A stretch of DNA of 64,000 nucleotides from Cycas panzhihuaensis (Eukaryota; Plantae; Cycadophyta). The position numbers were made by a program, and so were the translations under genes. Positions 1 to 59,884 of the stretch are shown piece by piece. The notes beneath the pieces are model-generated. The model worked only from the letters and a program-made list of their open reading frames with translations, ran no database searches and was not told where the DNA came from. Every line of letters begins with the position of its first letter. The stretch's first letter is position 1. The DNA lies in the NCBI GenBank assembly GCA_023213395.1, contig CM041465.1:50909741-50973740 (forward strand). The letters run 5' to 3'.

Positions 1-3000
1 TAATTGATGCTTAACATGTGATGATTTTATCTTATTCACATGGGTATTGAACTAATATAATTGAGTCTCTACTATTGGAAATTATGTTTGTTGTTTGAGA
101 GCATATACTATGGCAATTAGTATAGAAAAACCCATTAAAACTAGTGGTAGAACATTATAATAGGTAACAAGGAGTAGTAGTCAAAGGATACAAGAGATGA
201 TAGGAGTAATCATCTTGCATGGTTTAGGTTTCATCTAACGAATGAAGAATTGGTGGCTTGCTATCTTATCCACAAGGTTATTGACATCACATTCTTATTT
301 TGGGCTATAGTTGAAGTGGACTCAAATAAGAATAAACCTTAGAATCTACTTAAATAATGATAAATCCATGGTCCTTGTAACCATTGGTGATGTATTCCTA
401 AATTGTTATGCACTCTAAATTAATTTGCATAAGTTCATATAGATTTAGAAAAGTGATTTTCATTATACACTTATAATTTTCCTCTCTAATTTGTTGTAAA
501 TACTCATTGAAGTATCACTCATGTACACTAAGGTTTCATTCATGCATCAAGATTTATCTCATAGGCATGAATCTATATGTGTATATATTTATATGAATAA
601 TTTAATAGAGAAGGAATGAGCATTGCTTTTGATTCAAATCTTCTTGCATATGCATGGTATTTTTCTCTAATATAATGTTGAAGTAGGAACGAGCTTGAAC
701 TCGCTCATGTGAGTATTAAAGGTATGTTTAATCATGGAGGATGTCAACACTTGCTACATTACATAGTAGTAGCTATATTTATGTTTGAATTTATATATTT
801 GCATATTCCATCATATGCTTGTCTTTTATTCATCGAGTAGCCTGATAAAATGTTATTCATTTATGACTACTAATATTACAAAATTATGGAAATGTGTATA
901 GCTAAAAGTAAATCAATGTTTTGGTTTAGGCTAATAGAGATGTTTTCCCTATGTTCACTTAGCATTGCAAGTAGTTTGTCTAGACTTTACATAAGAGAAA
1001 TGGATATAATAATTGATTGGATAGCTTTTGTAGCTTTGCTTGAAGTTGAGTGAAGTGATTTACTCACTTTTTTCTAAATAATTTTCTAAGTTTGGTGGTG
1101 CATGAATTTTCTCTAAGAATATTAGGAACATGAGAAGAAACTTAAAGGTAAAATTGTCTATTTTCACTCATGGTTTTCATGAGAAACTGATTATGAAGAT
1201 GAACAAGTTAGTTATAGAAAAATGTTGTTGGACAAGAATCTAGAAATCAATTTATTAGGACATTTTAGTACAACATTTGTAGTAGGAAAATACTCATTCT
1301 TGTAAATTTTATGAGTATCTATTACTTATAATAACCATATCATAATGACAAAATTGAAGAAAAAATGGCACCCATTTATGCAATTTTTTAGACTTAAACA
1401 CTAAAAGCTCATCTTAAAAACATCAAATTTATTATTAAAATTCTTTTATGAGTTGCACATTTGAGATCTAGAGTTTCATCCCTTAGAAAATGCTAAAAAC
1501 TTATCTAAAATTTGTTTAGAATGCTAAAGATATTTTTCTTGCTCTTGAGGTGCTTTTTTATGTTGTTTTTTATGTGGGATTTATATGAAAACATTATATA
1601 AGCTTCTTAACAAGCCTTTAACACCCATTTAACAATCAATTCTCCTCTTTGAATCCATTTCAATGTTAGGAATATAATGTTATTTAGTGGCCGTAAAATC
1701 ATTAGACAATACTTTATCACACTTGTGAATATTTGAACATCATTAAATGTTGTGTAAATGCTCATCTAAGTTATTATAAAGTCATTGAAAGACTTAAAGG
1801 TTCTCACACATTATCTTATTGGTGGGTGATTTGTGCAATATCATTAGCCCTTAATGAGGTAACCTATTCTTATAAAAAGGTAAAACATATTGATGGATAA
1901 TCATGCGGATACCTAATTCTTCTAGGTGGAGAATAATATACTTCCATCACCATGATTGCCATGTATATCATTTAATATTAATAAGATCTCATACATATTA
2001 GAAAGTATTTTTTCCTTTCTTAGGTTTTGCACTATAAATCTTGTGTCTTAATATTGATTACTTGATTCATGTTACATTGTTCTTTATTGATGATTATTAT
2101 ATTACTATTTTATCATATTCATGATCTTGTAGTACCTCCATTTCCTAACATAGTATCAAATCTATGTTAGTGTAGTCTTATAGTAATTTCATAACATGAC
2201 ATTAAAACTAATGGTAGAGATCTTGTGAATTCAGAGCCACAATTATTACTTGATATGGAATGAGAGTATAATTATTTGATATGAATGCATAGAAGGTGAT
2301 TGTATGTTGCAGATTAATCCTACAATAATCTTAAAATAGGAAGTTGGAAGGAAGCTTGTAGTAGTTTCTAAGCTAGTTTTATTAAGAGTTGAGAAGAGCT
2401 CATTGATTGAAGGAACTAATATTATGCTTATTATAACTAGTGAAATTTGTCTCAATTTCTTAACATGAGTAAAGAAGGAGCAACCTTTATTTATAGAGAT
2501 CTTAGATCAAAGACTAAAGTTTAGTGGTGCTTAATGAAATATGGAATCTTTAGTGAGTTACACCAGTGGAGCACATTATTGGGGAAAGCATCCCTACTAT
2601 AGTAAACCATAAAGAGAGTATCTTTAACTAATTATTTTAGAGGAGGCCATAATAGTAGTAAAAATCCTACAAAAAAGGTAACATCTTACATGTGAGTAGC
2701 TAGTTGTGCATGTAGCAAGGGGAGTATGTTAGATGAAGAAATGTGGCCATAAGATTGAATAACATTTATGGAAGATGTATGTGTAATGAAATCTACCTTA
2801 GATCTATCTCATGTTTCATAAACATAGTCAAATGAGAGGAAAGTACATACAAAACATTACACATATCAATGTGTAGATGCTAAGCAAAATGGCAATTTAT
2901 TTTGGTGAATTATTATTATTTTTTATAATGTTTAATATGAATTAAATAAAATTAAATAAATATTTCATATCCATCAAATCCTTAATAATAGTAGGCGGTC

Positions 3001-3555: not shown

Positions 3556-3773
3556 AAGATTGAAGGGAAATTTATTATTTATTTATTAGAATCTTGATGT
3601 GTATTGACAAAAGAATAGGTCTTTGATGATAATTGAATGGATGTTAAACACCTTGATCTATTTTGATCACCTTAAAGATGTTGTAATTGTAAGAATTTAA
3701 AATTTCACTCTAATACCATATTTGAATGTATTCATTATATACAAATATTAAATATATATAATATATTATTTAT

Positions 3774-6700
3774 TATTAGAATATGGAGAATAGAGAAAAG
3801 TAGGTGAACATAGAAATTAAAGTAATATTCAAGTCATATTGAGAGTACACATTGTAAACATCATTGTATTAAGCCATCTTTGAAGAGAGTACATATAAAT
3901 TACTTTAAGAGGTGGTGTTGAAGAACACCAAATTTTACACCCCATAAAATATATACTTGGGAAAGAGGAGGGAATCCTCCTCAACCTCCAAAATTCAAAG
4001 TAATATAAAATAATAACTTAACATTAAAATAATAACAATGAATAATAAAATAATCTCACCTTAACTTACCATGAGGATGTGTGCACTCATATGTTCTTAA
4101 GGTGAGAGTTAAGTGAGGGACATTAACCCCAACATACTCCCCCTTAATATTCATCACTTATTCTTTAGTTTCTTTTTGAATTTGTGGTACAAGTACTTTA
4201 GGTATACTTTGACAAGGTGATTGTCCTCATGTCCTTTAGCTTCATCATCTTTGAAGTGGTTAATAATTTGCATCATTATCCTTTTCATATGATATTCAAT
4301 AAAATATGATTCAAGTGTAGATATAACTTACTTAAAATTAATAGAATTGTCTTTAACTTTGACTTTATACTTTTGAGGAGAGTTGATTAGGTCAAATATA
4401 TATGTAATCTCAAATGTAGCAATGTGATTATTAGTCTCAATTGAATCTTCAACATTATATGTAACATTAGATTTTTCATCAATAAACACCTGCTCTATCA
4501 TCTATCTCACAAAGAACACATCATCAATATAGTCAAATTTATTTAAATCTAAAATTTCCCCCCTATAAGGTAAGTATAGGGTATCCCAAACTAATTTTGA
4601 TATGGTTAAATCGCCAACACTAGTGAATACATCATTATTTAGTGTAGAAAAGATTAGAGCTAAGGCTTCATTATCTTTTTTCAAGTTTTCTCTAAAATTA
4701 AGTTCATTCTTAAGATAACCATCACTTACATAATGCTATTAATTATTTACAATGAGATGAGTTTTTAAAATGTACTTCTAAATGTAAAAGTTAGTCCTAT
4801 CAAATATGGAAAACCTTAAGTTATCTTTATTCGTTGTCATTGTAATCAATAAATTATAACTTCTAATAAGAAATCAATCTTGAAATAAGCAATAGAAAAG
4901 AGGTATAACTCCTTAAATAATGAGATAAATAATTGATAAATAATCTTTTAAATTAGATTCAATGAATGCTATTTGTAAAGTACTTTTCATAAGACTTCAA
5001 AATAGGTTAATGTGCCTTCAAATAATCAAATGCAACTTTGAAATAATTTTTAAAAAATAAACAAAACAGATCCTTTAATTTTAAAATCTTATTAAGAGTA
5101 AATAACCATCAAATGAGCCTTTCAAATCAAAGATAACATTCAAATAGTCATAAATGCATGCCTATTGAAAAATAATATAAACAACCTTTATTGAAATGAA
5201 ACTAAATAAGAAGATAATAATATGAGTTTTTAATATTCAAATGCAAAGCACTTAACTTTGAAATAATGATCAATATTCAACTTATAGTCTCTTAAAGTAA
5301 TGACAAATATATGAGGCTTTAAAGAGATGAACTATGAAGTATAAATGTAAATATAATGAAATGCTTAACATGAGATGAACTTCAAAAGCATAAAGAAGCC
5401 ACAAATGGCTTATGATTATGCACTAAAATACACTTATCAATCTTTAAAAATATAGTGGATTTAAGATAAATAAGAATGTTTTTTTAATTAGTGAACCAAC
5501 AACTTTAGATATATGGAATTTCTAGCAAAATTTCTTGAAACAATGTAGATGAAATAAAGAGATAATCTTTTATAAATTCATATGAAAACTAGGTGTAATC
5601 TTAAAGTTTTAAAGGTGATAAAAGACCTTAAATAGCCAAAAATACTAAAAGAAATCCTTTTAAATTCAAATATAAATATTAAAAAAAGAGAATAGTAATG
5701 GTAAGGAGCATTAATTATCATTTTAATCCAAATAGAGCTCTTGATCTTCAAGAAGCCAAAATTGATGCTAAAGAGCTAAAAAGAACTTATAAGCTTATAA
5801 AACCAAGTAAATATTATTGATAATTAATTAGCATATAGATAATAATCAAATATATTAAGTTAGAATAAGAGATTTGGCTTAAAATATCAAAGAATGTATC
5901 TAACTAAGATTGAAACAGAGCCTTAACTTCAATGGATTCAAAGACATGAAAAATAGTATCAAATCATGATAAAACCTAATTTAATATATAGATCATAAAA
6001 AATCTTTTTGACAAATCCAACCATTCAAAAAATAGGCTCCTAGATCAAAAGTTATGACTATTTTAAGAACTTTACTACTAAGATTTTTAAGGATTACAAT
6101 AGTACCTAGTGGTGAAATACTAATAATATTTTGCTCCTACCTTTGATTGACATCAAACCACTTCCATTGGATATAAAATTAAAAAATATACAAAATAAAA
6201 AGAAAAATGAGGTCATTTGGATACTAGTAGCTAATTTTATGGCTCTTTGAAGTTGAAGTTTCAAAATTATCCCAAAAATACGGTGACAGAAAAGTAGATC
6301 AAAATTAAATCTACTATAATTTTTATAACTTTTCACTAAAACTAGCACTATGACCATTTAAAAAAATAGTGAAAATGATTTAAATCATAAAAATATTAGT
6401 TGAGATACCAATATAATGGCTCTAAATTATTGTTAGGATGATTATGGCTATAAACTCTACACAAATCTAAGAAAATATAGATTATTTTGAGCATATATTG
6501 CTTGTTATGAGTGGTTTGATAGATCTCCTTTTAAAAACTTAATAGATCTTATTTTTATGCTAGATGAAGTTAAATGATAAAGCTTTGAATGTAGTATAAG
6601 ATCTAAAACATTAAATGAAACTAAGTAGGCCAAGATCAAGATGTTAATAATAAAAAATATTGCCAAGATTTTGCTTTGATACCATGTTAAAGTATGGTGA

Positions 6701-7047
6701 CTAGATTAGAGCAAGTGAACCCATAAATCAAAGTAAACATTTAATATATATTAAGAGTATACATTATAAACAACATTATATTAAGCCATCTTTGAAGAGA
6801 GTACATATAAATTCCTTTAAGAGATAGTGTTGAAGAACACCAGGGTTTTGCACCCCATAAAATATATACTTAGGAAGGAGGAGAGAATCCTCTTCAACGT
6901 CTAAAATTTAAACTAATATAAAATAATAACTTAATATTAAAATAATAATAATGCATAATAAAATAATATCACCTTAATTTACCATGAGGATGTGCACACT
7001 CATATGTCCTTAAGGTGGGAGTTAAGTGGGCAACATTAACCCCAACA
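3774..7047 (-). mobile_element. E3: gag-only (TR-GAG-like) copia-type LTR element inserted in the 3' LTR of E2
   Basis: LTRs 3774-4134 and 6685-7047; PBS 6673-6684 (GCTTTGATACCA); PPT 4135-4145; perfect TSD TTTAT. Confidence 0.92.
4135..4840 (-). pseudogene. gag: Short copia Gag-derived ORF of E3 (stops)
   Basis: Hand translation MTTNKDNLRFSIFDRTNFYI*KYILKTHLIVNN**HYVSDGY...KKDNEALALIFSTLNNDVF...SKLVWDTL matches the copia Gag N-terminus (DUF4219/UBN2-type). It ends KVYLKYLYHKFKKKLKNKVMNIKGE at the PPT. Confidence 0.8.
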
Positions 7048-8717
7048 TTTATATCATGAGGAATGTATATAATTCACATAATATAAGATCAATATATCAA
7101 GAAATAACTTGAGATATAATATATAGATATAAGAAGCATGTTAAAGTATCACCACAACAGAAAGTAAATTTATATGTAAAAAACCTAGTATGGAAAAAAC
7201 CATGGAGAAGGTTAAAGTTAAAGGCTTCTCTTTATGATCCTAAAATATTGCATCATCAATTTAATGATCTTTCTGAAGTTCTCAAGTGGTGTGTGTACAT
7301 ATCTATAGATATATCACCTCGTGAATATTTTATAATATTTCTTGAATTATTTTATCATTTAATAGGATGCTTATATGAATAATCATATATATTATATCTA
7401 TCAATAATTTTAGTTAATGAAATTTCATATGGGTCCACTACTTTATATTAAATATTAAATATATAAAAGTATCATATATTCCAATAATTCCCTTTAATAT
7501 TTAATGTCTTCAATTTACAATCTTCAAATCTTTAACCTTAATCTTCATACTTTCCCTATATATTAGAATCTATAAACCTATAATACATATCAAATTTGTA
7601 TCAAATTGAATTAAGTTATACCACTTATAACCTATAAATCTATAAGTTTATTAGTATTAAGCTTGTTTCTTATAAGTAATTAACATGTAATCTATTATCA
7701 AATCATTCTATAATCAATTGTGATAATCAGTGACCAACTATTAACATCCACTTATAAAATACCTATTAACCAATAATTAATAAACCAAATAATCAATCTT
7801 GAGTTCATGACCTTTACTTGTCATATTTACATGAAGTTTTATCCTCAATAACTTCATATTTTCACATGTAAAATTGTAATAAACATCCTATTATTAACTT
7901 ATCATCTTAAGAGTCTCATAAATAAAAATAATTACTAATATATATATAAAACAACAACCATCTACCGAAATACATAGGTAAACCAAGCATTGTAATCATT
8001 AGTTCTCTAGGAAGTATTTCTTATATGTGGTTCATTAACAAACAAGAGTATCAGGAATATCTAGTATCATAATGTATGTGTTGTATTATAGTAGCTTGTG
8101 AAACCTTTTCTTGTCTTTTATATAGAAGATAGCCTTGTATGATTTATTCATCTATTCATGCGTTAAAATCTTTCTTTTGGTAACTAATAAATAAAATATC
8201 AACATCAACAAATTAATAATTTGAATAAGCTAACTCTAAGAATAAGGCATACCACCTAGCCAAGTCAAGATAGCTATAATAAAGTAATATAAAGAGTATG
8301 TTCTTATGCCTCTTATCATACATGCAAGCTAGATTTCTCATTAACAAACACATATTTAATATCAATTGGACTTCTCAATAATTGATTTTGGTATACTAAG
8401 TAAACAATATATATGACTTCTTCTCTATATCTCATAAATATGTGGAAATTTCACTTAATCATCACATCAATATTCTAATAAATAAATTAGGCCCTTCATT
8501 AATATAAATCAAGTGGTGTTATCATCATCATTCATCAATAAATCAAGTGATCATGACATTTAATTAGTAAGTATAACTCTATTTATCAAATGTGTAAAAT
8601 ATGAAGGGGGATTTATATTATATACAACATATTTAAGATTCCCACATTAATAATATATCTCACAACATCAATTTTGAGCCTAAATTATTATAATTGAGCC
8701 TTAAATATCTTTATTTT

Positions 8718-8946
8718 TGTTGGAAATAATATTTGCAGGACTATGCTCTGATACCAAATATAGGAAGTAGAATATAGCTCTAAGTGCTCTGATACCAAAT
8801 GTAGGAAATAGAATGGAGCTAAACTGCTCTAATACCAAATGTTAGAAATAGAATGTAGCTAAACTACTCTGATACCAAATGTAGGAAATAGAATGTAGCT
8901 AAACTGCTCTGATACTAAATATAGGAAATAGAATGTAGTTAAACTG
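8718..8946 (-). repeat. Tandem ~40-bp 'U5 end + PBS' array inside the E4 3' LTR (5 PBS copies)
   Basis: GCTCTGATACCA-like copies start at 8745, 8786, 8826, 8866 and 8906, each followed by AA + TGTAGG/TGTTAG/TATAGG-AAATAGAATG-like sequence. Confidence 0.95.
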
Positions 8947-9357
8947 AGATATAATAAACTTTAATATATTCAAAATAACAGTATTGCATCAAATATTCAA
9001 TATAAATCTATGTAACAATGTAGCAATATAGATCGATATTGTACAAATGAACTATGAGAGCTTGATAGCATTATCTTCAATCCATTGTTGTTGAGAGCAT
9101 GACAAATATCCTCAAAGAAGGCGATGTCTAAAAGACACTAGGGTTGTACACCCCATAATATAAATAGTTTTGGGGAAGGAGGGAAACTCCTCAACCCTTG
9201 AATTTAAATTAATAATAAAATAATGTAACTTAACTCAAATAAACTAATTCAAATTAATATTAACTTACCTACATGTGTTTTAGCATCACATGTGTAAATT
9301 GAGGTGCACAATCCTGGTAGGTAAGAGGGAGTTGAGTGATGACATTATACTCCAATA

Positions 9358-10079
9358 TTCTCCCCCTTAATGTCATCATGAACACTTGTATCTTTTCCTT
9401 GAACTTATGGAACTTATACTTGAAAAAAACTTTGAAATTCTGATCTTGATCTTTATCAACTCTTCTCACCCTTATAGTCACATATGTCTCTTTATCATGG
9501 AATGATGTAGAAAAACTACAAGTAGATGAAACTTGATTCAAATATAAATGAATAGCTATAATTTTGATTTTGTCAACTGGAATATTAAGAAGGCTTTGAA
9601 CTTGAACTTTTGTAATCTTTATGCTTTGAACAACTGTCATATCATCAGGTTCATTCTTTGTCATATCATCAGATTCATTCTTTGTTATGTCGTAAGATTC
9701 ATCTTCATTCTCCCCCTCAAATGGAGGATCAAATCCTTGTGCAACAAGGTGGTCCTACATTTGATCTAAATCTTTATTGGTTTTGTCATCATGATCTACC
9801 TGTTATGTTACCTATCTCACATGCTCATCAAAAATTTCATCAAATACATGGAGGGTATCTCCCCCATAAGTAGAAATTAATACATTCTAAACTGATTTCA
9901 TCATTCATAGTACAAAATAATAAACCTAATGCTTCATTATCCTTTCGAATATATTCTTTAATGCTAACATCATAATCATGTTGCAAATATTTCCATAAAT
10001 CATGTTCAATAAAATAGTTTCTCATAGTGTTATGCCATTGTGCAAAATTTTGGCCATAAAAAATAGGGAATTGAGTCAT
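9358..10079 (-). pseudogene. gag: Short copia Gag-derived ORF of E4 (frameshifted)
   Basis: ORF track: MTQFPIFYGQNFAQWHNTMRNYFIEHDLWKYLQ...KDNEALGLLFCTMNDEI, then ...KVFFKYKFHKFKEKIQVFMMTLRGR. Contains a 24-bp tandem repeat at ~9637-9700. Confidence 0.8.
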
Positions 10080-11048: not shown

Positions 11049-12230
11049 CTGGAAGATGTTTGGAAGCTCCCCCTTATTCTGAAAATAGCTATTTTCTGGT
11101 GGACATGTTTCATGAATAAAATTCTCACTGTAGATAACCTTTAAAAGCGAGGCTTCATGTTGGCTAACAGATGTGTGCTATGCTGTAAAGGGGAGGAATC
11201 CATTGATCACATCATCCTTGAGTGTCCTTTCACAAAGGAAGTTTGGAAGTTGTTGCTTAGAAAACTAGAAGTATACTAGACTTTCTCGCAAAGGACAGCT
11301 ATCCTCTAGCTTACTTGGCAAAGCCCATTCAAAAGTAATACTCTCAGCCACATCTGGGAGAATACGCTCCTGATTCTGGCATGGAATATCTGGAAAGAAA
11401 GGAACAACATGATTTTCTAGGGAAAAGAGAAAGACCAGATGGCCGTCTATCTCAAAATCTGTTCAGACATCAGAGAAAACGTTGGAAAAGCTAAAGAAAA
11501 ATGCATATCCCTGGCAGAAAGTAGGATTTTGCTCAAATGGGGCATAGAACATGAATTTGAGGTTTCTAAGCCCAGAAGTACTAGATGGATCCCTCCAGTC
11601 AAGCCCTGGATCAAAATTAATTTTGACAAGGCAGCGAAAGGGAACCCTGGAGAAGCTGGGGGAGGGGGAATCTGTAGGGATAGCAAAGGCTCTCCCATTT
11701 AGGCCTTTGCGAATTATTATGAGAACCAAACTAACAACTACGTGGAAATGCATGCTATGCTTAAAGCCCTCGACCTAGCCTACATAGGGGGCTCTCAGGG
11801 GCTGGTGATTGAGGGAGATTCTGAGGTTGTCTTAAACTCGCTAAAAGGTGAGGCCCTTTCGGACTAGAGGTTTCAAGCCATAATCAAAGATGCCAAAGAG
11901 ATCATTAAAGGAATGTCGGATGTCTGCATAAGACACACCTTGAGAGAAGGCAATAAAGTAGTAGACTTTTTGGTAAATTGGGGGGTGAGGAACAAGAGGA
12001 GTCAAGTGTGGAGATATGATTTTCCTAGGGACCTTTTGGCTGTGGTTGACAAGGATATGATATGTAGGAGCTAGCCGCGGGACTTGTCCCGGCATTCTAG
12101 TCCTCTCACCTAAACCATGGGGTTGTCACGGTTAACTTTAGATTGGCATCTGATTTGCTTTTTGATGTACTAGGTTGTGGGATCCTGATTTCAAACCCAC
12201 TCTAATTCATTTTATCTTACAAAAAAAAAA
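11049..12230 (+). mobile_element. 5'-truncated L1-clade LINE with zf-RVT and RNase H, inserted in the E4 leader
   Basis: Motifs NKILTVDNL*KRG...RCVLCCKGEESIDHIILECPFTKEVW (zf-RVT) and WIKINFDKAAKGNPGEAGGGGICRD, IEGDS, REGNKVVD (LINE RNase H). Poly(A) at 12221-12230. 16-bp TSD AGCTTATAGAACGTAG / GGTTTGTAGAACGTAG (13/16). Confidence 0.93.
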
Positions 12231-15525: not shown

Positions 15526-15893
15526 ACTCTGATACCAAATGTTGGAAAATAGAATGTAGTTCCAAGTGCTCTAATACCAAATGAAGGAAAATATGTAACT
15601 GAACTATGCTCTGATACTAAATATTGGAAAATATAGAATGTAGCTAAACTGCTCTGATACCAAATGTTGGAAATAATATTTGCAGGACTATACTCTGATA
15701 CCAAATGTAGGAAGTAGAATGTAGCTCCAAGTGCTTTGATACCAAATGTAGGAAATAGAATGGAGCTAAACTACTCTGATACCAAATGTTGGAAATAGAA
15801 TGTAGCTAAACTGCTCTAATACCAAATGTAGGAAATAGAATGTAGCTAAACTGCTCTGATACCAAATGTAGGAAATAGAATATAGCTAAACTG
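15526..15893 (-). repeat. Tandem 40-43-bp 'U5 end + PBS' array spanning the E4 5' LTR end and leader (9 PBS copies)
   Basis: PBS copies start at 15526, 15568, 15608 and 15651 (outside the LTR) and at 15692, 15733, 15773, 15813 and 15853 (inside the LTR). Confidence 0.95.
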
Positions 15894-17104
15894 AGATATA
15901 ATAAATTTTAATATATTCAAAATAATAGTATTGCATCAAATATTCAATACAAATCTATATAACAATGTAGCAATATAGATCGATGTTGAACAAATGAACT
16001 ATGAGAGCATGATAGCATTGTCTTCAATCCATTGTTATTGAGAGCATGACAAATATCCTCAAAGAAGGCGGTGTCTAAAAGACACCAAGGTTGTACACCC
16101 CATAATATAAATAATTTTGGGGGAGGAGGGAAACTCCTCAACCCCTGAATTCAAATTAATAATAAAATAATATAACTTAACTCAAATTAACATTAACTTA
16201 TCTTAACTTACCTACATGTGTTTTAGCATCACATGTGTAAATTAAGATGCACAATCCTGGTAGGTAAGAGGGAGTTGAGTGATGACATTACACTCCAATA
16301 ATTTTAAATGAAACTCAATTTTTTTTTTCATCAATATCACCATCATGATCTTTACAGCCTTTAAAAACATTAGAAAATTCTAAAAATCTCTGTCATTTTA
16401 TCTTTAAAATATGTCTTGCAATCACTCATTTTGACTATCTTAAAATTCTCTTTTCAACACAACTAATTGTTAATGTGTCATAAAAAATCATGTAGTCCTT
16501 AAGAAAATGAGTTTAGCTCCTTTTAGTGGGGCTCTTGGCCATACTAGCTTCTTCACATGACCGATTATTGATGCCTTGAGGGCTTACCGATGAACTTCAT
16601 AAAAGATTAAAATTTGATTAAATATATCAAAATATCATGTTTGCTTAATAACACACACCTCTTTATTTTGCTACATATCTACTAGTACAAACCTACTCCT
16701 ACCTATTTTATATAAATCATTCATTGATAGAATGAGTTCTCATATCATGCAACATGCCTTTAACTAAGTGCATTTACTGCTACTAATTATGAGATTATAT
16801 AAGATGGTTGGTGTGAAGAAATATAAAAATGTGTATGTATTATGAATTATTGGATCTTACTCATACATAACAAGTAATAATAAAGAATACAAGTACACAA
16901 GACGTAAGATTTATATGGCAAACTATTTCAAGAAAAAAAACCATATAAGAAAATTAGTCGATTATATTTTTTTAAATCTTGATTTATACATGCTCCTTGA
17001 TATGGGTTGACTCATATTATAAATGCCACCTAAGGATTTATATAAAACCCTAAATGGCACATTAACCAATGGTTATAACTCTTGGTATTTATAACTTTTA
17101 GCTT

Positions 17105-20100
17105 TATTAAACCTTTATGTTTAAATGTTAAGTATTGTACTTTATATTGTAATATAATATACTTTATATAAGGGTGCTTTACTACCTAATGTGATAAAGT
17201 ACACAACTACATTCTTTCTAATAGTATAATGTTATGAGTTGAGGGCCAATGTTTTGTACATGTAAGTGCACATGGGTAAAGATATACATGATTGATAAGA
17301 GTTAAACAAGTAACTCTCTGAGGTTCCTCCTCCTTGTTTATATATTAAGACCATTTCTCTTTTAGATAATAAGAATGTAAGGTATTGTATTGTTATATTG
17401 ATCATTTGAATATAAGATAATCTTATTTATTTGAAGAGAGGATCAATTCCTATTCCTCTATATCTTGTATCTTTCATATACTTAATTTATTCTTACTTTA
17501 TTACTTAGTTGCTTATCTTCATAGTGCTATTGATGCGATGTTAATTATCTTATTATCTTAGCACACTCCCTCTCCATAAGATCCTAAGCTATGTTTCATT
17601 ATCATTTTATATTAGAGTTAAATGCTTAACTCAACATTTGATATTAGAGCTAATTGGAGAGGAGTTTTTTATTATTTTCATGTTTGAAGAAGAGAGACCA
17701 GACCCTCAGTGATGACCTTCACTTTCTAAATGTAATCCAAGATTAGTTTGGTTTGTTTTTAGTAGTTTCTTTATTATTTTAAAGCTTTTGCAGGTTGGAA
17801 ATTACTAGATTTAATTTCTAGATTTTTTAAAAGTTTATTTAATATGTGCAATAAAGAAAAAATATACATATAACTAATTTTTCTTTATTTTTATAATTAC
17901 AAAAAAAAAAAAACTCCACAAAATTTGCACTCTAATTACTACAAGATCTCTTCTACTAGCTGAAAATCTATCCAGATCTATTATTCTTAGTCAATTATAA
18001 TTTGCACCTATATACATACAAAGTTAAGTAGATTTCATTTAATGTTGGATATTTTTTCCAAATGAAAAATATTATTTTCTTTGATATCTTTCCCTATACT
18101 TATATTTTATGGCCTCTTGTAGGTGTGCTACCCTATCTAGACATTAAATACTAACTTTTCAAGCTATACGATTGAGTACTAAACTTTACAGATGACATCT
18201 AATCTCTCACAACCCATGCACCCAATGTGATTTCTCTCTAGTTCATTCTCACTTAATACAACACTAAACACCACCAAATTTAAGTTGTATCCTTATTGGC
18301 CTTTGATAAAGGCCTCCTTGAAGCTTTATCATGAACATGTCACTCTATAAAGAGATCAATCCAATTATTTATTCAAAATTCATCGTTGGCTCTTGTTCAT
18401 GATTTTTAATTAAATATTTCCTTTCAAAACTTTGAAAAATTACTTTAGGTTATGAAATTTATTATATAATAAGAATATACCATTTTTAATTAAACTTTAT
18501 TTTATAAAGTTTTCATTTTAAGTGACCTTTTTATGATATTTAATCACTTTTAAAGCTATTTCAAACTTTTTAAAAAATTTTAAGCTCATTAATACTTTAA
18601 AAAATTATAAATATGTTATTTGACTAAAAAATAATTTATCATTTTTTATACTTTTAATGATAAATTCACATTATATAAGGTGTTCTAAAGCTCCCTACAT
18701 GGTGACCTTCTTACCCTAGTCATTAAAAAGTGCCCCAAAAATCATTCTTTTAATATAAAATCACTTATTTTAGAGTGGTTTAGGACTATTTAACATCTTA
18801 ACATTATTTTGATGCCATGTTCTCTTGCTGCACATGATTAAAAGTGGAATTTAGTGGTTGTTCTTTCACTTAAGAATAAGCCCATTTCAAGCATAATAAG
18901 CAAGCAAGCATTTCTTCTTTAATACTTGATACTTTTTTCAATTTTTAAGTATTTTTTATACAACACTTAAAGTATTATTTTAAGCACTCAAGTAGATTTT
19001 TTTAAAGCCTTTTGTATCAATCTTTGTAAGTAGTTATAAAGTAATATTATTATCTACTTAAGCAATTTATTTTAATCTACTTAAACCCTTAAAAAATTAC
19101 TTAAAATATTTGTTAGAGAGGTCTGAAAAAGGTTCAAACCTTGCCTCTATATCTCAAGCTTAGTGTATTTCCTAATGGATGAGTTGACTATACAGTTAGT
19201 GCATGATAATTGAGATCATCTTGAAGAAAAGAAGGTTTGAAAAGGGTGTTATTAGAGCCACAAATTCTAAGGAAAACAAAGTACGACTGTGCACATCAAC
19301 TTTACCTTGCTTATTCTAGATTTAACTTGGCTAAATATAGGATCTATTTAAAAGATTAGGGTTAGACCAACTTATTACTTAGTTCTTTATCTCTTATCAT
19401 TCTATTTAATTGTTAGATCTTCTTTATAAGATCAAGGTTATAGTATGTTAGAAAGTGGAACTTAAGTAACAAAAACCTTGAGTCTCCAAGTTATTTGCTA
19501 GTGTCAAAAGCCCTTTCTTAAATAATTAGAAGAAACTAGCTACTATTACATGCTCAATGCAAGTCATATTAAGTTAAAAAATCAAGATAATTTTTAAGAA
19601 TAGAAGAAACAAACAAAAAATTTATTAATTATAAATGAATTTTAGGCTTATATATTTAGGAAAATTTCTCAACTTATTCTTGTTAAAAGCCTAATAGATA
19701 GAAAAATAATCATTTATCCTAATCTTACTTTGCTTGATACTTGAGAAGCTAAGGATGAAATTACCTTAACATTTCTTCATATGATTATGGATACTATTGT
19801 TGATCATAATATTATATCTACTTCTACTTCTAAAGAAGTTTGGGATACTTTGATTGCTTTGTATGAAAGGTTAGATGATGCTCATATTATAATGAAGAAA
19901 ACTAAATTATTTACTTTGAGATTTATTAAGCTTATGATGGACTTTTTGTCATTGATAAAAGAGATCAATCATGAATTAACTACATTAAAGAAACTAGCTT
20001 CAAATGAAGACCTTGTTATTGCCACACTTCATGCATTATCAAGGGAGTACAATGGCTTTATTTCTTCCATCACATGAGGAAGCACTCTTTGTGTAATGAC

Positions 20101-23100
20101 TTTCAATTAACTTGAAAGTTTTCTACTATGAGAGGAGCAAATCTATTCTCGTCAAGGTGAATAATCTATTTCAAATGCATTCACAGCCAAATATAAGGGC
20201 AAGCAAACTCCTAAATCTAATCTCAATAAATAGTTTAGAAACTTGAATATTGGTACATCAAAAGCTAATGATGTTTATCATTATTATGGCAAAAAGGGCC
20301 ACATTCAACCAGAGTGCCAAAATCATTAATTTGAAATGTAATAACAATAATAACACCAATCAAAATAATAGTAATAGAAAGAATAATAGCAATAGTAATA
20401 ACCACCTCATACACCAAATCGAAGAGGATTTTAAGAAGGCCACATAGGAAGGGGATTGTTTAGAGGTGGCAACTAACACCACACTAATCAATTTGCCAAT
20501 GATGATGGCAAATTATTTTGTGTCTATTATATCATAAACAATAATAGCACATATATTGTTGATTTAGGAACATCTCATCATATGACTGGTGATAAGGACT
20601 TACTTTATGTAGTTAGAGAAGGAAGAGGAAAAATAGTCACTTTAGGTAATAATGAGACTATACAGATATCTGGAGTGGGTAAAAGTGCCTCTTTCCACTT
20701 ACCATATTATCCTTTTATAATATTTCCTATAAGTGATGCCTATTCAGTACCTTTAATATATAAAGCCTTCTCTTTATTAGCTAACTAATAAGTAATAAAT
20801 AACTATCTTATTTAAGGGGTAAAATGTATTATTAGTGATAGAAATAATCAAGTGATTGTTATTGGTCATGAAGACCATGACTTTTACAAATTATATGCAT
20901 TAAACATAATACTTAATACTTCTCCTACATATTTTGTTTCATAGTCGCTACCCAAAGAATAACTTTGACACAACAAGCTAGACCACTTGAGCCTAGACAA
21001 CATTAAAATAATGTTTAGTAAAAGTATGGTGTATGGGCTTTTAAAGATTTCTATCTAAATGCCTTTATGAAGCTTATATTATGGGGAAATAATATTGAGT
21101 GCCTTTTCTTAAATACAAAGTATGATGTACATCATAACCATTATAATTAGAACATAAAAAATTATGTTGACCTATGTCCACACCATCTCTTAAAGGAGCA
21201 CTTTAGAGCATCACTTTTATTGATGACTTCTCATATAAGGTTTTAGTTTATTTTATCAAATATAAATTTAAGGTATTAGAAAATTTTAAACAATTCAAAC
21301 TTGCTATGGAAAATAAAGTAGATCTACTAATCAAAATACTGAAATCTAATAATAGGAGTGAATTTATTTCAAAGGAATTTAACTAGTTTTATAGAGATCA
21401 CAGGATCCAGTGACAACCTACTGCTCCATATACACCTTAGTAAAATGAAGTAGTTGAAAGGATGAACAAGACCTTGCAAAGTAAAGCTAAAGCCATGATG
21501 CATACAAAAGGGGCTTCCACTTTCTTATTAGATAGAAGTATTTCATACAATAACTTATGTTGCTAATATGAGCCCTACTATAACAGTCGTTGACATGATA
21601 CTAAAGGAGGCTTGGTTTAGTAAAGAGTCAACTATTAGCCATTTGTGTACTTTTAGGTACACTATATATATGTATATTCCCTAATAATAAAGGAAAAAAT
21701 TAGATAATAAAAGTCTAAAACATATTTTCATTGGTTACTCTATTAACTACATAGTATATAAAATGTATAATTCCACTTTTAAAAAAATGCATATATCTAG
21801 AGATATTATTTTTGTTGAGGATAATGAGGAGATGGAACTAATATACATCCATATTTCTCTTGACAAAGGCAGATAAATTGTTGAGGATTTCCTTCCCTCA
21901 TAATCTTCTACACCATGTTTATCTTTTTCACCTATTGTTTCTTTGTCACATTCAATTCCATCATCATCATCATTGATACCTCTTGACCTTGGTAAACATT
22001 TATTGACCTACCACTTTAAGCCCATCATATTAAGGTTATTACTTCCACACTGAAGAAGTTACCCAAATAGTACACTCAGATAATATAAGATGCACAAGTC
22101 ATAAAAGGAAAATATCCATCCAAAATGCAATAATAAGTAAACAATTATGCACTTATAACTGATATACTTTGTATTGATGAGCTTACTTTTGAGACTAATA
22201 AAAGTGAAAAGTAGAAAGTTGTTGTGGAAAACCTTTCTATTGGAAAGAATGAAACTTCAAATTTGGTAAAATTACTTACTAGGAAATAAACAAACATATG
22301 CAAAAGGAGACATAAAACCAAATTTTAATCTAATAGTTCTATTGAGCATCAAAAAGCTTAATAGATAGCCAAAGGATTCAAATAGAAAGAAAGCATTAAT
22401 TATGAAGCAACCTTTGCACCTAGGATAAATATGAATATCATCAAACTAGTATTATCCAAAGCTACTCAATTGAAGTGGCTAATCTATCAAATGGATATAA
22501 CAAGTGCCTTTCTAAATAATGACACTATAATAGAGGAATATTTGGAGAAACCTCCTAGTTAATACAACATATTGGTATCAAAGTTAACATTATAAACATT
22601 TTAGGGGGGGGAGGGGAGGAGGTATTAGACCTTTATATTTAAATGTTAAGTATTATACTTTATATTGTAATGTAATTCACTATATATAAAGGTGCTTTAC
22701 TACCTAATGTGATAAAGTATACACCATATTCTTTCTAGTAGCATAATGTCATGACTTGAAAGTCAATGTATCCCTTATGCACTTTTAGCCATGGGTCAAG
22801 GCAAGCATATTAGATAAGTGTAAAACATGTATCCCCCTAATGTTCCTCCTTCTTATCTATATATTAGGACCATTTTTCATGTAGATAATAAGAGTGTAAG
22901 GTATTGCATTGTTATGTTACTTATTTGAATACAAGACAATCTTATTTATTTAAAGGATCAATTTCTACTACTCCATATCTTATATCTTTCATATACTTGA
23001 TTTATTACTTAGTTATTTAGCTTTATAGTGCTATTAATATGATGTTAATTATATTATTCTCTTAGCATACTCTCTCTCTCTAAGAGATCTTAGGTTGTGT

Positions 23101-23142
23101 TTTATCATCATTTTATATTAGAGTTGAATGCTTAACTCAATG
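17105..23142 (+). mobile_element. E6: Ty1/copia retrotransposon, internally deleted, inserted in the 3' LTR of E5
   Basis: LTRs 17105-17636 and 22623-23142; PBS TGATATTAGAGC 17639-17650; G-rich PPT 22603-22622; TSD AGCTT/GGATT (the uninterrupted E5 LTR reads GGATT). Confidence 0.9.
19550..22600 (+). pseudogene. gag-pol: E6 gag-pol pseudogene (Gag, Zn knuckle, PR, IN, N-terminal RT; most RT/RNase H deleted)
   Basis: SKEVWDTL (Gag); YYGKKGHIQPEC (knuckle ~20280-20320); IVDLGTSHHMT (protease ~20555); TFIDDFS and YTP**NEVVERMNKTL (integrase); QMDITSAFLN (RT ~22490). Start coordinate is approximate. Confidence 0.88.
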
Positions 23143-23839
23143 GGATTAATATTAATTAGTCACCATTTAGTATTAACTATAAATGGTTAACCTTAACTCC
23201 CATTCAAATATCCCCCTCTAATATAAAAGTGGGAATTTAGTTTATATCTTAAAATCTTTGGTAAAAGTTGGAATTACCCTTATTATCTTCTTTGCATTTG
23301 ACATATCCCCCCTCAAGGATAATTTTGTTAAGTTTCTAAATTGATGCACATCAAGCATTGATGCACCCAATGTTGTGAAAAATTGGTTCTTAATAACCAA
23401 ATCTACCACCAAGATCTATTCTATTTTGTAATAAAAATAAGATTTGAAACTCTAATCAAATGCAAGTATATAAACTAGAGATCGTTCAATATATACACAA
23501 GAAAATCATAAACATTACTAAGTACACTTGATTTAATGTGATAAAACCCTAGTAGGGTGCTAGGAAAATATCCACATAAGAAAGGTATCAAGCTTTATTG
23601 ATCAAGAATGGAAATCTATATAATAACCACCATAAAGTTCTTACAATAACAACAACAACAACCCCCAAGCAAAAATTACCTAATTTAGGTTACATAAAGA
23701 GTATTATAAGAAGGTATAAAATCTCAACTATCAGATCTAGGGCCTTTTTGATGAACAACCCTAATTATCTTTACTATTTGTTAGGTTTTAAATCCTAAAA
23801 TTTTACTTAGGGGGATACTACTCTCAAACCCTTATTTAC

Positions 23840-23874: not shown

Positions 23875-26325
23875 TATTTTTGATACCTCTATATACCCCT
23901 TGGCTAAGGGAGGTTGTCGCTACCCTTGATTCCCCCCAAGGAAGTTAGTGGAGAAAACCATACTAAAAATAAATCAAAATTTTAGCTTCCTTATACATTG
24001 TTATCAGATACCTAACACCTAATTTAAATCATGAATAAGTGTTATATAATCTAGAGTTAATGATAATTCTATCAACCCATGTTTGTAAACTTCATTCATT
24101 TACGTCTCCTTTATATCACTCTTATCAATAGTTAATATGCCCATTTCTATAAGGCATCTTGAATCCACCTCTTCTACGAATTCTCTCAATGTTATACCTT
24201 TGTAAAAATCTCTATACTTATAAATGGGCTTAGCACTTTCTCTTAGAACTTTGCAAAGGCTACCTAGTAATGGATTCATACCACACAAACTAGATCTTGA
24301 ATGGCTTCATAATGACTTGAGACATGATATTTGATTATGTTTTAAATATTTACCCCCTTTCAAACACTCTAAGACAGTTTCCTAATGCTTTAAATAAGGC
24401 TTTTATGCTTTGTATATTACCTTCATACTTTATGTTGACTTCGCATACTACATATATAGCCTCACACTTCATATGTATGGTCTCTATGGTTAGTACATAA
24501 CTTTATACTCTCCAAATACATAACATTACCTCTCACTTGCATCATAATCTTTTAAAAGAATTTTTTATATTAATTCACTTGCCCATATATTTTTAAGTAA
24601 ATAATAAGAATAGCATTATCACTTGATCTAATACACATGTAAAGCATCATACCACCCATAGTAGTTCAAAAAAATTTATAGCCTACTCCATCAAAATATA
24701 TGTTCACATTCTAAATAAGCTCTAAACTAAACTCTCATCAAGTAGGATCATCATATGATGTCTCCATGTTAGAATGAGGTTTCAACATAATTAGTTTACA
24801 TATGGTTTTTCTATTAACTTTCACGACATCAGAGTGTTTTTCATGCAACTTAATGTAATGAACATGACCTCTAAACCAATAATAAATAAGCTTTGAATTA
24901 GTTTTCATGCCTTGTAACATGCTCAAAATCATCTCCACTCCTTGAATCCTTTAAGTCCATGCTTCTAACCAATGATTAAATTATTCATCGATTAAGAATT
25001 TTTACTCCAACATGTAATGGCTTCATCCAAAGAGATATGGGTGCAATTTTTTAAGGTATACATGACTTTTAAAAATACATGAAGAAGAATAATTAATAAC
25101 TATGATCATAACTTTAGGTTTATAATCTTAGAGAAGAATATAATCTTGATTATAAATAATAACATCTCTAATAAATCATGATATATCATACTAGTATTTC
25201 CACTAGTATAAATAGACCAACAACCTTCAAATAAGAGAATTAACTCTAAAACAAACATATAAACATCTATATATAATAGAATGCAACACTATACCATAAA
25301 CATGAGTTTTAAAACTCCTCAAATTGATCTAATCATACCCATTAAAGGTGCCAATAGCCTCTTTGTTATCTAGACATAAGATTTGATTCCAAACATACTT
25401 AAACAACCTTTAAATAGAGACTAACACTCTTAAGATGAGGCCAATAGAGCCTAGTACTATTATATCACCTTTAAAATTATCCTAATAGGCATATGGAGTG
25501 CCCAACCAACCCTAAATGGCTTTAACAAGAACCTAACATGATTTAAATAGTGTACCTAATATTGATTTAAGACCTTAAACAATGAGAAAACCTTATTAAT
25601 AGGTGAAGTCCACCTCCTTGGTCACTATTACACCACTGTGTCACTCTTTTGGTTATTAGAGAAGATTAAAAATTAATAGAATTAGACTCTACCAATATTA
25701 CCAAGTAGCCTTTGATCTTATCACATTTACCTAATATAGCCTCAACTATATATTCTATTTAGCTCTAATACCATGTGAAAAAATATAAAAAAATATATGT
25801 ATTCTAAACTATAGGATCTTAATCATATATACTAAGTAATAATAAAGAGCATAGGTACAAAAGATGTAGGACTTGTATGGGAAATCCTTTTAGGAAAATT
25901 CCTACATAGGAAAATTAGCCAACTATATTTTTCTGATCTTGATTAATACTTCTTTCTTGATATAGGTTAACCCATATTATAAATGCCACTTAGTGTTTAT
26001 ATAACATCCTAAATTATGTATTAACTAATAACTAAAACTCTTAGTATTCATGCCCTTTGGATTAACATTAATTAATCACCACTTAGCAATAATCACAAGT
26101 GGTTAATCTTAACTACCACTCTAATAGTCAATCTCACAAAATTTCAACCACTTCTATAAGGGGCTAGCCTATATTAGTGAATTAATCTAGAAACAATTTT
26201 CTTTACCACATCATATTTGGTGAACTTCTTTAACACCTACAAGCTTTAAATATATAGTACATATATGATAAAAATAGATATTCATATAAATTTAATAATC
26301 AATATACCATTAATTTGTTGTATTT

Positions 26326-26401: not shown

Positions 26402-28869
26402 GGGCTTTATATCATCTATATATGATTTCAATCAACTTTATTTTGCCCCATAATCTTGGCCACATATCACTATTACATTTAGGTTTTGACTCATCAAATT
26501 CCTTCTCAAATTGGTTCATGTATTAGCTCATACTAACTATTTTATTAGCTTAATTAGTGGCTCAATTGGCTCATGCATAGGCTTTAATCTGCGTCATAAG
26601 ATCTTTCATAATATATATTTGATACCATGTAATAATTTAGAATTTTACTCTGATACCATATTTGAATGTACTTATGATGCATAGTGAAAGTATATAAAAC
26701 ATATATAATATATCAATTATATCATAAGGAATGTATATAATTTATGTAATATAAGATCCATATATCAAGCAATAATATAAAATATAAAGTATAAACATAA
26801 GAAATATGATAAAGTATCACCATAAGAGAAAATATATTTATACATGAAAAACTTGATGTGAAAATATTTATGGGAAAAGGTTGGAGTTGGGAGCTCCTTT
26901 TTATGATCTTTAAATACTATATCTCCAAGTTAATCCTTCTTCTCTCAAATTCTCAAGTGGTGTGTATACATATTTATAGATATATCACCTCATAAATAAC
27001 CTATAATATTTGTTGAATTGTCTTATAATGCAATATGATACTTAGATGGATAATCATATATATCACATTTATCAATGCTTTTTGTGAGTGGGATTTTATA
27101 TGGGTCTAATACTTTATATTAAATATTAAATATGTAAAAATATCATATATTATAATATTAATAGAATATATTAGTATTAATAATGGTTGCCCATAAGTCA
27201 TAAAACCCAAGGTAGTACAATTTATTATTAAATTATAAGATTCTTTTGAGAACTTTATAGGATAAGAGATGGAAAAGTAAACTCCTTATGAATTCATTAA
27301 ATTATAGTAGTTTTATAAATGTTACTACTATAGTGGAATTGATGATATGATGATTTTATAGTACATGTATATAGTTAGATAAATAGACCAAGTTGTTATT
27401 TGAAAGTTTTTTATAAACCATGCACATGAAATACTTCCTTATAAATTAACAATTGTAGAGGTTGACTACCCATGCATTTCGATAGATAGTTATAATTTTA
27501 TTTAGATGTTAATATATTAGTATATTAGTGAAGTGTATTTATAAGTATTTTGTAATTTTTCTAATGATCTTTACTTATATGAAGTAGAGTAAATTTATAA
27601 GTATTTTATAATTTTAAGTGATGACATTTGTTGCATAAAATATAAAGATAAGTAATGACTTGAAGACTTATCTAGGAGCCAAAGATAATGATATACCTGC
27701 TTATTTAAAGACTTTCTAGTAGTAAGTATATGAAGATGATGATGAAATTTTATGACATTTTTTTCCCCCCTATAGTTAACATTAAAGGGGAGTGTTAGAA
27801 ATGTAGTGTTGTCTAGTGGTTACAATATGATAAAATCATTAGATAATACTCTCACATATTTATGAATATTTAAGTACTGTTAAATGCTACGTAAATGCTC
27901 ATTTAAATTATTACAAAGTTATTATAAGACTTAAAAGTTCTCATACATTATCTTATTAGTGGATATTTGGTGAAACATCATTGGTCTTTAATGAGGTTAC
28001 CTATTTAAATAAAAGGGAAAGACTTACTTATGGATAGTTATGTAGATACCTACTTCTTCTAGGTGGAGACTAGTGTATTTACATCATCAAGATTATTGTG
28101 TACATCATTTAATATTAATGAGATCCTATATATATTATAAAGTAGTTTTCCCTCTAATACGTTTTTCACAATAAATCTTGTGTCTCAATATTGATTAATT
28201 GATTCATATTATATTGTTATGTATTGATGATTTTTATATCAATAATTTGTCCTATCCATGATCCTATAATACCTCCATTTCTTAAAATTTGATTAGGTTC
28301 AGTCAAGTTTTTTAAACACAATGATAATGATAATTATTAGCATGTTTAATTTTTCTAACATGTCATTTTCCATCTAATTTAATAGCTATTCAATAATATA
28401 ATTAGCTTTGCTTCCATATGAGCATGATAAATAACATATGGTTTTTATTATTCAAGTATATACCTTTAAAAAGTATTTTTTTAGAGGAGATGTGCAAAAT
28501 ATTATAAGTAATTTAAATGTGATAATATACCTAATAGCCCTTGAGAGTACAAAAAACTATAAGCTATAACATAATAGTTTGTGATTTGATTTATGGTGCA
28601 TAACTTTGAGTATTAGCTATGCTTAACTAAGATAGTAGTATGTTGTATGTTTTCTAAATTGACCTTGTGACCTTTGAGTTTTAGTTATGAAACTAAGCAT
28701 GTATTCTTTTCGAGGGTTTTACTTAATGGATGAATAACTATAGAATATAACAAATTAGCATAAAGCCTACTACCTAAATTATTTATGCTTTCTTGATCTA
28801 ATCCTCTATATTTGGAAGGATGATTTATCCAAGTATACAACTTTTTAGGGGAGTGCACTTGATGGATAA

Positions 28870-47117: not shown

Positions 47118-50969
<3,852 letters not shown>

Positions 50970-59721: not shown

Positions 59722-59884
59722 TCCTTAGAGCCAAGGGTGATTTTGTTATAATATTTCTATTGTAATTCAAAATCTTTATTTCTATTTTAGTTTTGGGTTT
59801 GTGATAAACTTAAAATTAAAAATAGAAAGATTTTTTTTTAATTATAATAGAAAATTATAACAAAAACATCATTAGCCCCAAGGG
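59722..59884. repeat. ~160-bp imperfect inverted repeat (fold-back / MITE-like)
   Basis: The left arm CCTTAGAGCCAAGGGTGATTTTGTTATAATATTTCTATTGTAATT...TTTTGGGTTTG aligns with the reverse complement of the right arm, CCTTGGGGCTAATGATGTTTTTGTTATAATTTTCTATTATAATT...TTTTAAGTTTA. The loop is only a few nt. Confidence 0.88.

Follow-up and report, generated by a model that had tools for sequence, protein, structure and literature searches.

An inverted repeat at the junction between the internal domain and the 3′ LTR of Pseudoviridae was described earlier by Bousios et al. in 2010, who reported that its left arm 'always borders the PPT octamer' AGGGGGAG, that its loop contains the polypurine tract (PPT), the att site and the start of the LTR, and that its right arm begins, as the mean for classic copia elements, about 18 bp into U3 (PMC2829016). 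The repeat was present in 18 of 21 Sireviruses and in 'almost half' of classic copia elements, with a mean arm of 19 bp and 88.6% identity (12–29 nt and 70–100% in the classic elements); upstream copies of the PPT came without the repeat, and in elements whose linker is short or absent the left arm falls within coding sequence (PMC2829016). The supplement to that study gives arms for Drosophila copia, Tnt1, BARE-1, Wis2, RIRE1, Tpv2, Art1, Osser and others, and its authors hypothesized that the repeat 'exposes' the terminal PPT to RNase H, aiding formation of the correct primer (PMC2829016). Benachenhou et al. (2013) restated the Sire inverted repeat, linked to it a similar hairpin at the PPT of HIV-1 and urged a systematic search (PMC3601003); no experimental test of the junction inverted repeat was found in the searchable literature.

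The HIV-1 structure, a PPT stem-loop near the 3′ end of the RNA (Watts et al. 2009, as summarized by Benachenhou et al.; PMC3601003), likewise pairs sequence upstream of the PPT with U3 and leaves the PPT exposed, but it is retroviral and was defined by SHAPE rather than by sequence symmetry. The same summary names as an analogue the U5-IR stem-loop of retroviruses and Tf1 (Miller et al. 1997; Lin and Levin 1998; PMC3601003), in which a segment inside the LTR also pairs with LTR-adjacent sequence and presents a priming site; this stem-loop, however, lies at the opposite end of the genome (5′ LTR/PBS), serves minus-strand tRNA or self priming and is experimentally verified. The Conserved Hairpin Site of the fungal GalEa copia elements is a conserved 9-bp inverted repeat that adjoins the LTR and has a variable loop, but it is located 3′ of the 5′ LTR, where it takes the place of the PBS, and the sequences of its arms are conserved (PMC5445492). 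Finally, U-box motifs or conserved elements lie immediately upstream of the PPT in SIV (Ilyinskii and Desrosiers 1998) and, as TCTT, in the fission-yeast Tf elements, as outlined in PMC10085805; there too a sequence that abuts the PPT on its 5′ side has a bearing on plus-strand priming or is conserved along with it, but it is a linear motif that needs no partner in U3.

Here we analyse ten elements (E1–E10) in a window of 64,000 nucleotides of Cycas panzhihuaensis DNA (contig CM041465.1). Comparison of these elements to those of Bousios et al. shows the same arrangement, with the left arm at the PPT, the right arm shortly inside U3 and a PPT that is AGGGGGAG or close to it; the left arm can likewise be coding, as in short-linker elements, and the same RNase H primer role has been proposed. 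Both the observation and its interpretation thus match the 2010 account, so that the feature is already known, and the window copies are ordinary representatives of it. The window copies differ from the published ones in being short, decayed and mostly non-autonomous, a gag-only family among them, and in coming from a single, very AT-rich genome; their arms (8–17 bp) are at the short end of the published range.

Copia elements of the window

The window is very AT-rich (GC about 28%; about 25–38%) and consists of nested, decayed LTR retrotransposons, and ORFs longer than 150 aa are confined to a simple repeat at 49.5–50.8 kb. Self-BLAST of the window defined LTR pairs, about 0.16–0.64 kb in length, for nine of the ten elements. 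The pair of E4 comprises a 3′ LTR at 8718–9357 (minus strand) and a 5′ LTR at 15665–16300, which are 93% identical across 640 bp; the ends of this element are confirmed by the AAAAT target-site duplication (5 bp) that flanks 8718 and 16300. The remaining pairs are 3776–4134 and 6687–7047 (E3), 29018–29201 and 32580–32763 (E7), 7046–7486 and 26714–27157 (E2), 46169–46627 and 53728–54235 (E8), about 47121–47423 and 50805–50969 (E10), 17105–17634 and 22623–23140 (E6), 1664–2151 and 27793–28288 (E1), and, for E5, 25774–26126 together with a 3′ LTR that is interrupted by E6 (16812–17092 plus 23141–23210). For E9, neither BLAST nor Smith-Waterman alignment detected an LTR partner above the shuffled background, and a PBS was also not found; E9 resembles E1 over no more than about 20 nt. 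The 'junction' assigned to E9 is therefore based on motif resemblance.

The copia gag domain PF14223 was matched in E6 (39.9 bits), in E3 (25.5 bits, under the 27-bit cutoff) and weakly in E4 (19 bits), and E6 also contains a Pol_BBD domain; the ORFs of E5, E7, E8 and E9 gave no match in the copia domain search, which covered the ORFs of E3–E9. Matches to a tRNA-iMet PBS adjoin the 5′ LTRs of E2, E3, E4, E5 and E6. The gag and Pol_BBD matches, the PBS and the target-site duplication of E4 support the assignment of the window elements to copia (Pseudoviridae). RT is retained by none of the window copies. E3, E4 and E7 form one gag-only family, whose gag frame stops a few bases 5′ of the PPT, and E10 is apparently a distant relative of E3. 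Only three protein relatives of the E6 gag fragment were found, all on short contigs, and none of the E4 gag tail; viral and metagenome contigs, scanned by alignment, likewise yielded no related elements. The sole Ty3/gypsy element of the window (about 60.9–64 kb) leaves it before its 3′ junction.

Membership in the genus Sirevirus is not supported. That genus is marked by the AGGGGGAG octamer followed by an AT/TG att site, by several identical copies of the PPT clustered upstream of the 3′ LTR, by LTRs of about 1.3 kb and by a total length of 9–14 kb, whereas the window elements have neither the AT/TG att site nor LTRs of that size: the exact octamer occurs in E3, E4 and E7, where the att dinucleotides are TA, AA and AA, respectively, the other elements have variant PPTs, and the LTRs span only the range given above. 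Two further copies of AGGGGGAG lie on the E4 strand, at 9710 and 11067, and there are none in the other elements.

Stem-loops at the PPT/U3 junction

In E4, which lies on the minus strand, the left (5′) arm TGATGACATTA (9368–9378) comprises the final bases of the internal domain, abuts the PPT and is complementary at 11 of 11 positions to the right (3′) arm TAATGTCATCA (9337–9347), which corresponds to U3 nt 11–21. The 5′ side of the loop is formed by the PPT AGGGGGAGAA (9358–9367), which contains the exact octamer and lies directly 5′ of the first LTR base as fixed by the 5′ LTR copy, and the 3′ side by the U3 terminus TATTGGAGTA (LTR nt 1–10; 9348–9357). The homology between the 3′ and the 5′ LTR starts exactly at 9357/16300; the right arm is unchanged in the 5′ LTR copy, where the complementary left arm is absent. 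An open frame from the gag region runs through the left arm of E4.

The two other members of the gag-only family have stem-loops on the minus strand at 4110–4160 (E3; 17-nt arms with 14 Watson-Crick pairs and one G:U, counted as 14/17, and a 17-nt loop) and at 29181–29223 (E7; 13-nt arms, 11/13, rising to 12/13 with the 5′ LTR copy). In these elements, the gag frame terminates within the left arm, at TGA TGA in E3 and TAA TGA in E7, and the gag stop codons of the family lie 6 nt 5′ of the PPT. Also on the minus strand, E2 (7447–7505) has A/T-only arms that match at 13/13 positions around a 33-nt loop, E8 (46585–46647) has near-identical A/T-only arms (12/12) and a 39-nt loop, E10 (47401–47448) has 16-nt arms with 13 Watson-Crick pairs, two G:U and one A:C around a 16-nt loop, and E5 (23193–23239) has a weak stem of 9/12. 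On the plus strand, the stem of E6 (22584–22649) has 14 matches, one bulge and one mismatch and encloses a 20-nt, G-rich PPT, the stem of E9 (38400–38441) matches at 12/13 positions, with a G:U as the sole mismatch, at a junction recognized by motif resemblance, and the stem of E1 (27777–27811) is 8 bp long. E1 pairs at 6/8 positions with its own 3′ LTR (six Watson-Crick and two G:U) and at 8/8 with the 5′ LTR copy, as had been predicted; indeed, all ten arm pairs of the original prediction were verified in the sequence, with their positions and match counts.

All ten stem-loops can be read in one order on the element strand: left arm, PPT, 0–3 att nucleotides, U3 terminus, right arm. The first base of the LTR, which starts with TGTTRG or, in many cases, with a decayed TATTRG, was taken from the alignment of the 3′ and 5′ LTR copies in 9/10 elements, and in all nine elements with an LTR pair this base is inside the loop. 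The claim that the junction is bracketed in every case thus stands for nine elements by LTR-pair alignment, whereas for E9 it is a matter of motif only. In 8/10 elements the left arm extends up to the first purine of the PPT (a gap of 0–1 nt in E4, E3, E7, E10, E2, E8, E9 and E1), whereas 3 nt separate the two in E6 and about 9 nt do so in E5. Right arms fall within U3 nt 7–43 and start at nt 7–32, with a median of about 10 (nt 13 in E6). Across the ten elements, arms are 8–17 nt and loops 16–39 nt long.

The stems had been described as having different sequences, which is overstated, given that E3, E4 and E7 are one family, that E2 and E8 have nearly the same arms and that most of the stems have a common inner core, ATATTAA / TTAAT(A/G)T. 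The starts of the LTRs share a TGTTRGAATAT-like sequence, and the arms of E2 and E8, which are pure A/T, contain the self-complementary AATATT. The outer stems are unlike in sequence and yet complementary (TGATGAC/GTCATCA, TAAGTG/CACTTA and TATGGATTA/TAACCCATA); between E10 and the E3 family, they consist mostly of different bases that are still paired, in a comparison for which positional homology is not established. Two predictions on sequence change within the stems were borne out. First, 12 of the 14 mismatches are of the transition type (p = 8 × 10−5), an excess that is consistent with the decay of stems that may formerly have been better paired. Second, E4 shows compensatory change relative to E7 and E3: one stem position is occupied by U:A in E7, by U:G in E3 and by C:G in E4, whose arms are each one nucleotide shorter, so that the register is kept.

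Junction pairing compared to chance

We scored each junction by the best inverted repeat whose loop encloses the position and compared the scores to those of about 122,000 other positions of the window, on both strands. With ungapped scoring, the lowest probabilities were obtained for E2 (p = 0.0016), E8 (p = 0.0023), E4 (p = 0.004) and E9 (p = 0.010), followed by E3 and E7 (p = 0.079 for each), E10 and E6 (p = 0.20 for each), E5 (p = 0.46) and E1 (p = 0.81); the combined Fisher probability for the ten junctions is p = 1.7 × 10−6. When the narrower published geometry was imposed, the Fisher probability was p = 1.8 × 10−8, with 6/10 elements below 0.05, and gapped scoring gave p = 2 × 10−6 in its strict and p = 9 × 10−7 in its soft form, the latter with 8/10 elements at or below 0.062. 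Local shuffles that preserve dinucleotides gave a Fisher p = 1.1 × 10−5. For individual elements the outcome depends in part on the scoring: the stem of E3 has p = 0.02–0.12, varying with the scoring, that of E10 has p = 0.007 with soft and 0.2–0.44 with strict scoring, and that of E6 has p = 0.04 when gaps are allowed.

The 5′ LTR junction provides a matched control, with the same U3 and an unrelated left flank, and its scores do not differ from the null (Fisher p = 0.79, 0.64 and 0.85). Nine decoys, that is, PPT-like/TGTT-like sites without an LTR partner, also score at the null level. When the right side of each junction was replaced by the 5′ LTR copy of U3, several stems improved: that of E6 grew to 15 bp, interrupted by one bulge (p = 0.0026), E7 reached 11/11 perfect base pairs (p = 0.004) and E1 reached its 8/8 (p = 0.12). 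E5, scored with the second LTR copy, had p = 0.62. The ten junctions are not independent, because E3, E4 and E7 are one family, E2 and E8 have nearly the same arms, and E10 appears to be distantly related to E3; when only the worst member of each apparent lineage is retained, the probability is about 5 × 10−4, by arithmetic on the gapped-score values. The shifted and shuffled controls called for by the original prediction thus favour the set as a whole, which exceeds chance at 10−5 to 10−8, but not E1 (8 bp) and E5, which individually are no better than chance. Support is good for E4, E2, E8, E7, E6 and E9 and moderate for E3 and E10. Taken together, these comparisons indicate that the junction inverted repeat is real, and that it is clear for about 7/10 elements.

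We further compared folding energies. RNAduplex energies of the junctions, compared to those of 11,018 control positions, gave a Fisher p = 0.048, and the MFE z-scores lie between −0.05 and −2.44 (the value of both E2 and E7) and average about −1.1. The stem described here is part of the MFE fold in 8/10 elements; the MFE folds of E3 and E1 are without it, and in them the G-run of the PPT pairs elsewhere. The AU-rich stems are thus thermodynamically ordinary, that is, no more stable than random duplexes from the same DNA, and because energy discriminates such stems poorly, we relied on the symmetry scores. Counts of G:U and A:C pairs in the sense orientation, used as a test for the strand that folds, carry no signal in the window (8 vs. 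4, p = 0.19) or in the metagenome stems (7 vs. 16, p = 0.09, in the opposite direction).

The metagenome stems come from a scan of metagenome contigs for the pattern AAGGGGGAG-NN-TGTTRG, which includes neither arm and yielded 115 usable sites, each compared to a GC-binned null from the same loci. An enclosing inverted repeat was found at p < 0.05 in 63% and at p < 0.01 in 42% of the 115 sites, an independent replicate of the window result; among the sites with the AT att dinucleotide, the share with such a repeat is 82%. The sites cluster into 54 groups. Among the AT-rich, plant-like groups there are at least nine unrelated arm sequences that abut the PPT (for example, TCATCATCAAAA, TTGCCATCAAGT, GTATTCAAGTCA, GAAAACAAATTA, GACTCACACTT and CGAGATCAAAA). 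GC-rich singletons with random (non-AT) att dinucleotides score at the null level and are presumably chance hits in prokaryotic DNA.

A copia RT lies upstream of the site in two loci, L003 and L059. The second of these has LTRs that are 98.6% identical, contains Pol_BBD, rve and RVT_2 and is a young, apparently autonomous classic copia element; its junction, a perfect AAGGGGGAG-TA-TGTTGG, has no enclosing inverted repeat (p = 0.90). The structure, although widespread, is thus not universally required and is dispensable for some copia elements, in agreement with the 2010 study. What holds of the predicted conserved structure is the precise pairing above chance; its energy is ordinary, and it is not universal. 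With that scope, the data support a conserved, positionally precise pairing that loops out the PPT together with the U3 terminus.

Possible roles and alternative explanations

We consider it highly probable that the repeat of the window is the known junction inverted repeat and that it is under selection. In the proposed mechanism, the last 8–17 nt of the internal domain would pair with U3 nt ~8–40 and close a loop of 16–39 nt, which would open with the PPT, followed by the att dinucleotide and the U3 terminus. The pairing may form in the genomic RNA, or its complement may form in minus-strand DNA that RNase H has freed of the flanking RNA. The hairpin would then mark the one correct terminal PPT, from which RNase H would leave a primer with exact ends, and plus-strand synthesis would begin at the first base of U3. 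The substrate of RNase H is an RNA:DNA hybrid, in which an RNA hairpin would already have been unwound. Because of this, and because some copia elements lack the hairpin, we regard PPT primer definition as the job of the repeat only tentatively, as a plausible role that falls somewhat short of probable. The combined statement, namely a known and selected junction inverted repeat with primer definition as its role, we judge to be fairly probable.

The same selected hairpin could instead act at another step, such as folding of the RNA 3′ end for packaging or dimerization, 5′–3′ cyclization, minus-strand transfer, read-through or polyadenylation, or a switch between translation and replication. 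A structure at the start of U3, present once per genomic RNA, would suit such steps; the gag stops in the left arm (TGA TGA in E3, TAA TGA in E7) point the same way, and the dispensability seen in L059 fits an accessory role. In Ty1, the CYC3 box adjoins the PPT and takes part in 5′–3′ cyclization and minus-strand transfer. Even where the arms are unrelated in sequence, however, the left arm follows the 5′ boundary of the PPT with nucleotide precision, which points to the PPT itself (PMC2829016), and we consider an action at one of these other steps to be unlikely. Two more specific variants can be drawn from the sequence. As the left arm carries the gag stops in the E3/E4/E7 family, a ribosome finishing gag would melt the PPT hairpin, so that the stem could act as a switch between the translation of the RNA and its use as an RT template; and as the repeat occurs in every lineage of the nest, including non-autonomous ones, it could be a cis signal for trans-mobilization, recognized by helper enzymes. 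Both are speculative, and we give them a very low probability.

The pairing might also be a by-product of two boxes that are conserved separately, one of them A/U-rich and directly before the PPT, like the retroviral U-box, and the other at the U3 terminus, which is recognized by integrase. The common inner core of the stems and the shared TGTTRGAATAT-like starts of the LTRs are what this would predict, and conserved boxes before the PPT are known, with TCTT in Tf and an element in SIV in the outline of PMC10085805. It is difficult to reconcile, however, with outer stems that vary but remain complementary, with the compensatory change in E4 or with the nine or more unrelated kinds of arm sequence among the metagenome sites, so we consider such a by-product improbable.

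Chance palindromes of very AT-rich, low-complexity DNA are a further candidate: GC is only about 28%, the arms of E2 and E8 are pure A/T and contain AATATT, E1 and E5 are at the level of chance, and the energies are unexceptional. Yet empirical nulls from the same DNA give combined probabilities of 10−5 to 10−8, the 5′ LTR and decoy controls are null, and the pattern was replicated in the metagenome data. The position-shifted, shuffled and 5′ LTR controls reject chance for the whole set, for which it is very improbable, whereas it holds for E1 and E5 taken singly. Least probable of all is a palindrome in duplex DNA that is bound by a dimeric protein of the host or the element, for example on the integrated provirus: symmetry in duplex DNA is inherent to any inverted repeat, and the G:U and A:C counts show no strand preference, but arm sequence, arm length (8–17 bp) and spacing (16–39 nt) vary by family, unlike a fixed protein site.

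With selection on the known junction repeat as the preferred reading, and primer definition as its tentative role, the feature is of modest practical use, as the repeat can help annotators to locate the genuine PPT, and the first base of the LTR, in elements that have decayed. The apparently autonomous element without a stem is a counter-example showing that the feature is not obligatory. How RNase H chooses one PPT and cuts it with nucleotide exactness is only partly understood, even in retroviruses. If the primer role is true, a hairpin that presents the PPT would be a second layer of recognition, an idea that has been in print since 2010; to this the window adds a controlled statistical confirmation, one series of compensatory changes and the persistence of the feature in small, non-autonomous copia derivatives.

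Sequence flanking the arms and the PPT

In the gag-only family of decayed copia-type elements (E3, E4 and E7; all minus strand), the left arm of the inverted repeat around the junction between the polypurine tract (PPT) and the 3' LTR overlaps the end of gag (E3, 4144-4160; E7, 29211-29223; E4, 9368-9378). The gag frame stops within the left arm, 6 nt ahead of the PPT, at TGA TGA in E3 and at TAA TGA in E7; the gag frame of E4 is shifted, and its open frame crosses the PPT and continues for about 85 nt into the LTR. On the other side of the junction, a CTCCCTCT-like pyrimidine motif complementary to the PPT lies in U3 immediately 3' of the right arm (E4, 9320-9336; E3, 4100-4110; minus strand), and the MFE structure predicted for E3 has the PPT paired with this motif and not exposed in a loop.

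The window holds 6 exact AGGGGGAG octamers, compared to 0.61 expected; two of these, at minus-strand positions 9710-9717 and 11067-11074, are additional copies in the sense orientation of E4. They are reminiscent of the multiple PPT copies of Sireviruses, although one of the two E4 octamers falls within the gag frame.

PBS-like sequences in LTRs and beside the PPT

Tandem units of about 40 bp were identified at the E4 LTRs (15537-15864 and 8756-8917, minus strand). Each unit terminates with ...ACATT, which resembles an LTR end, and next to it comes a tRNA-iMet primer-binding site (PBS) that is nearly perfect, TGGTATCAGAGC; nine copies are at and beside the 5' LTR and five are within the 3' LTR. 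Two other copia-type elements also have PBS-like sequences on the minus strand in their LTRs, either internally or at the LTR end: E2 in both LTR copies (3707-3718 and 26647-26658), of which the 3' one is split from the remainder by the E3 insertion, and E8 (46195-46206).

Immediately upstream of the left arm of E6, another element of this type, an LTR-end-like CAACA is followed by TA and the PBS-like TTGGTATCAAAG (22560-22584, plus strand), with the PPT and 3' LTR about 20 nt downstream of the latter. By its sequence, this segment looks like an LTR end and PBS set beside the PPT; a similar TTGGTATAC is found immediately ahead of the left arm of E9.

A Ty3/gypsy element (60903-64000, plus strand) carries a perfect tRNA-iMet-type PBS at 60903 and, after it, RVP_2, RVT_1 and RT_RNaseH_2 domains; the element extends beyond the window end and has an inverted duplication (57457-57658 / 59799-60000) just upstream.

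Single and paired junction motifs

At 2717-2732 (plus strand) the PPT/att motif is matched very well by AAGGGGAG-TA-TGTTAG, for which neither an LTR partner nor an enclosing inverted repeat was found in the window; the match is either coincidental or what is left of a stem-less junction.

Among the metagenome copia loci, four (L030:5243-5458, L026:1984-2199, L079:753-968, and L102) each contain two identical PPT/att/TGTTGG sites spaced 199 bp apart. A separate TTGCCATCAAG / CTTGATGGCAA inverted repeat accompanies every one of these sites, which suggests that the entire junction module was duplicated in tandem.
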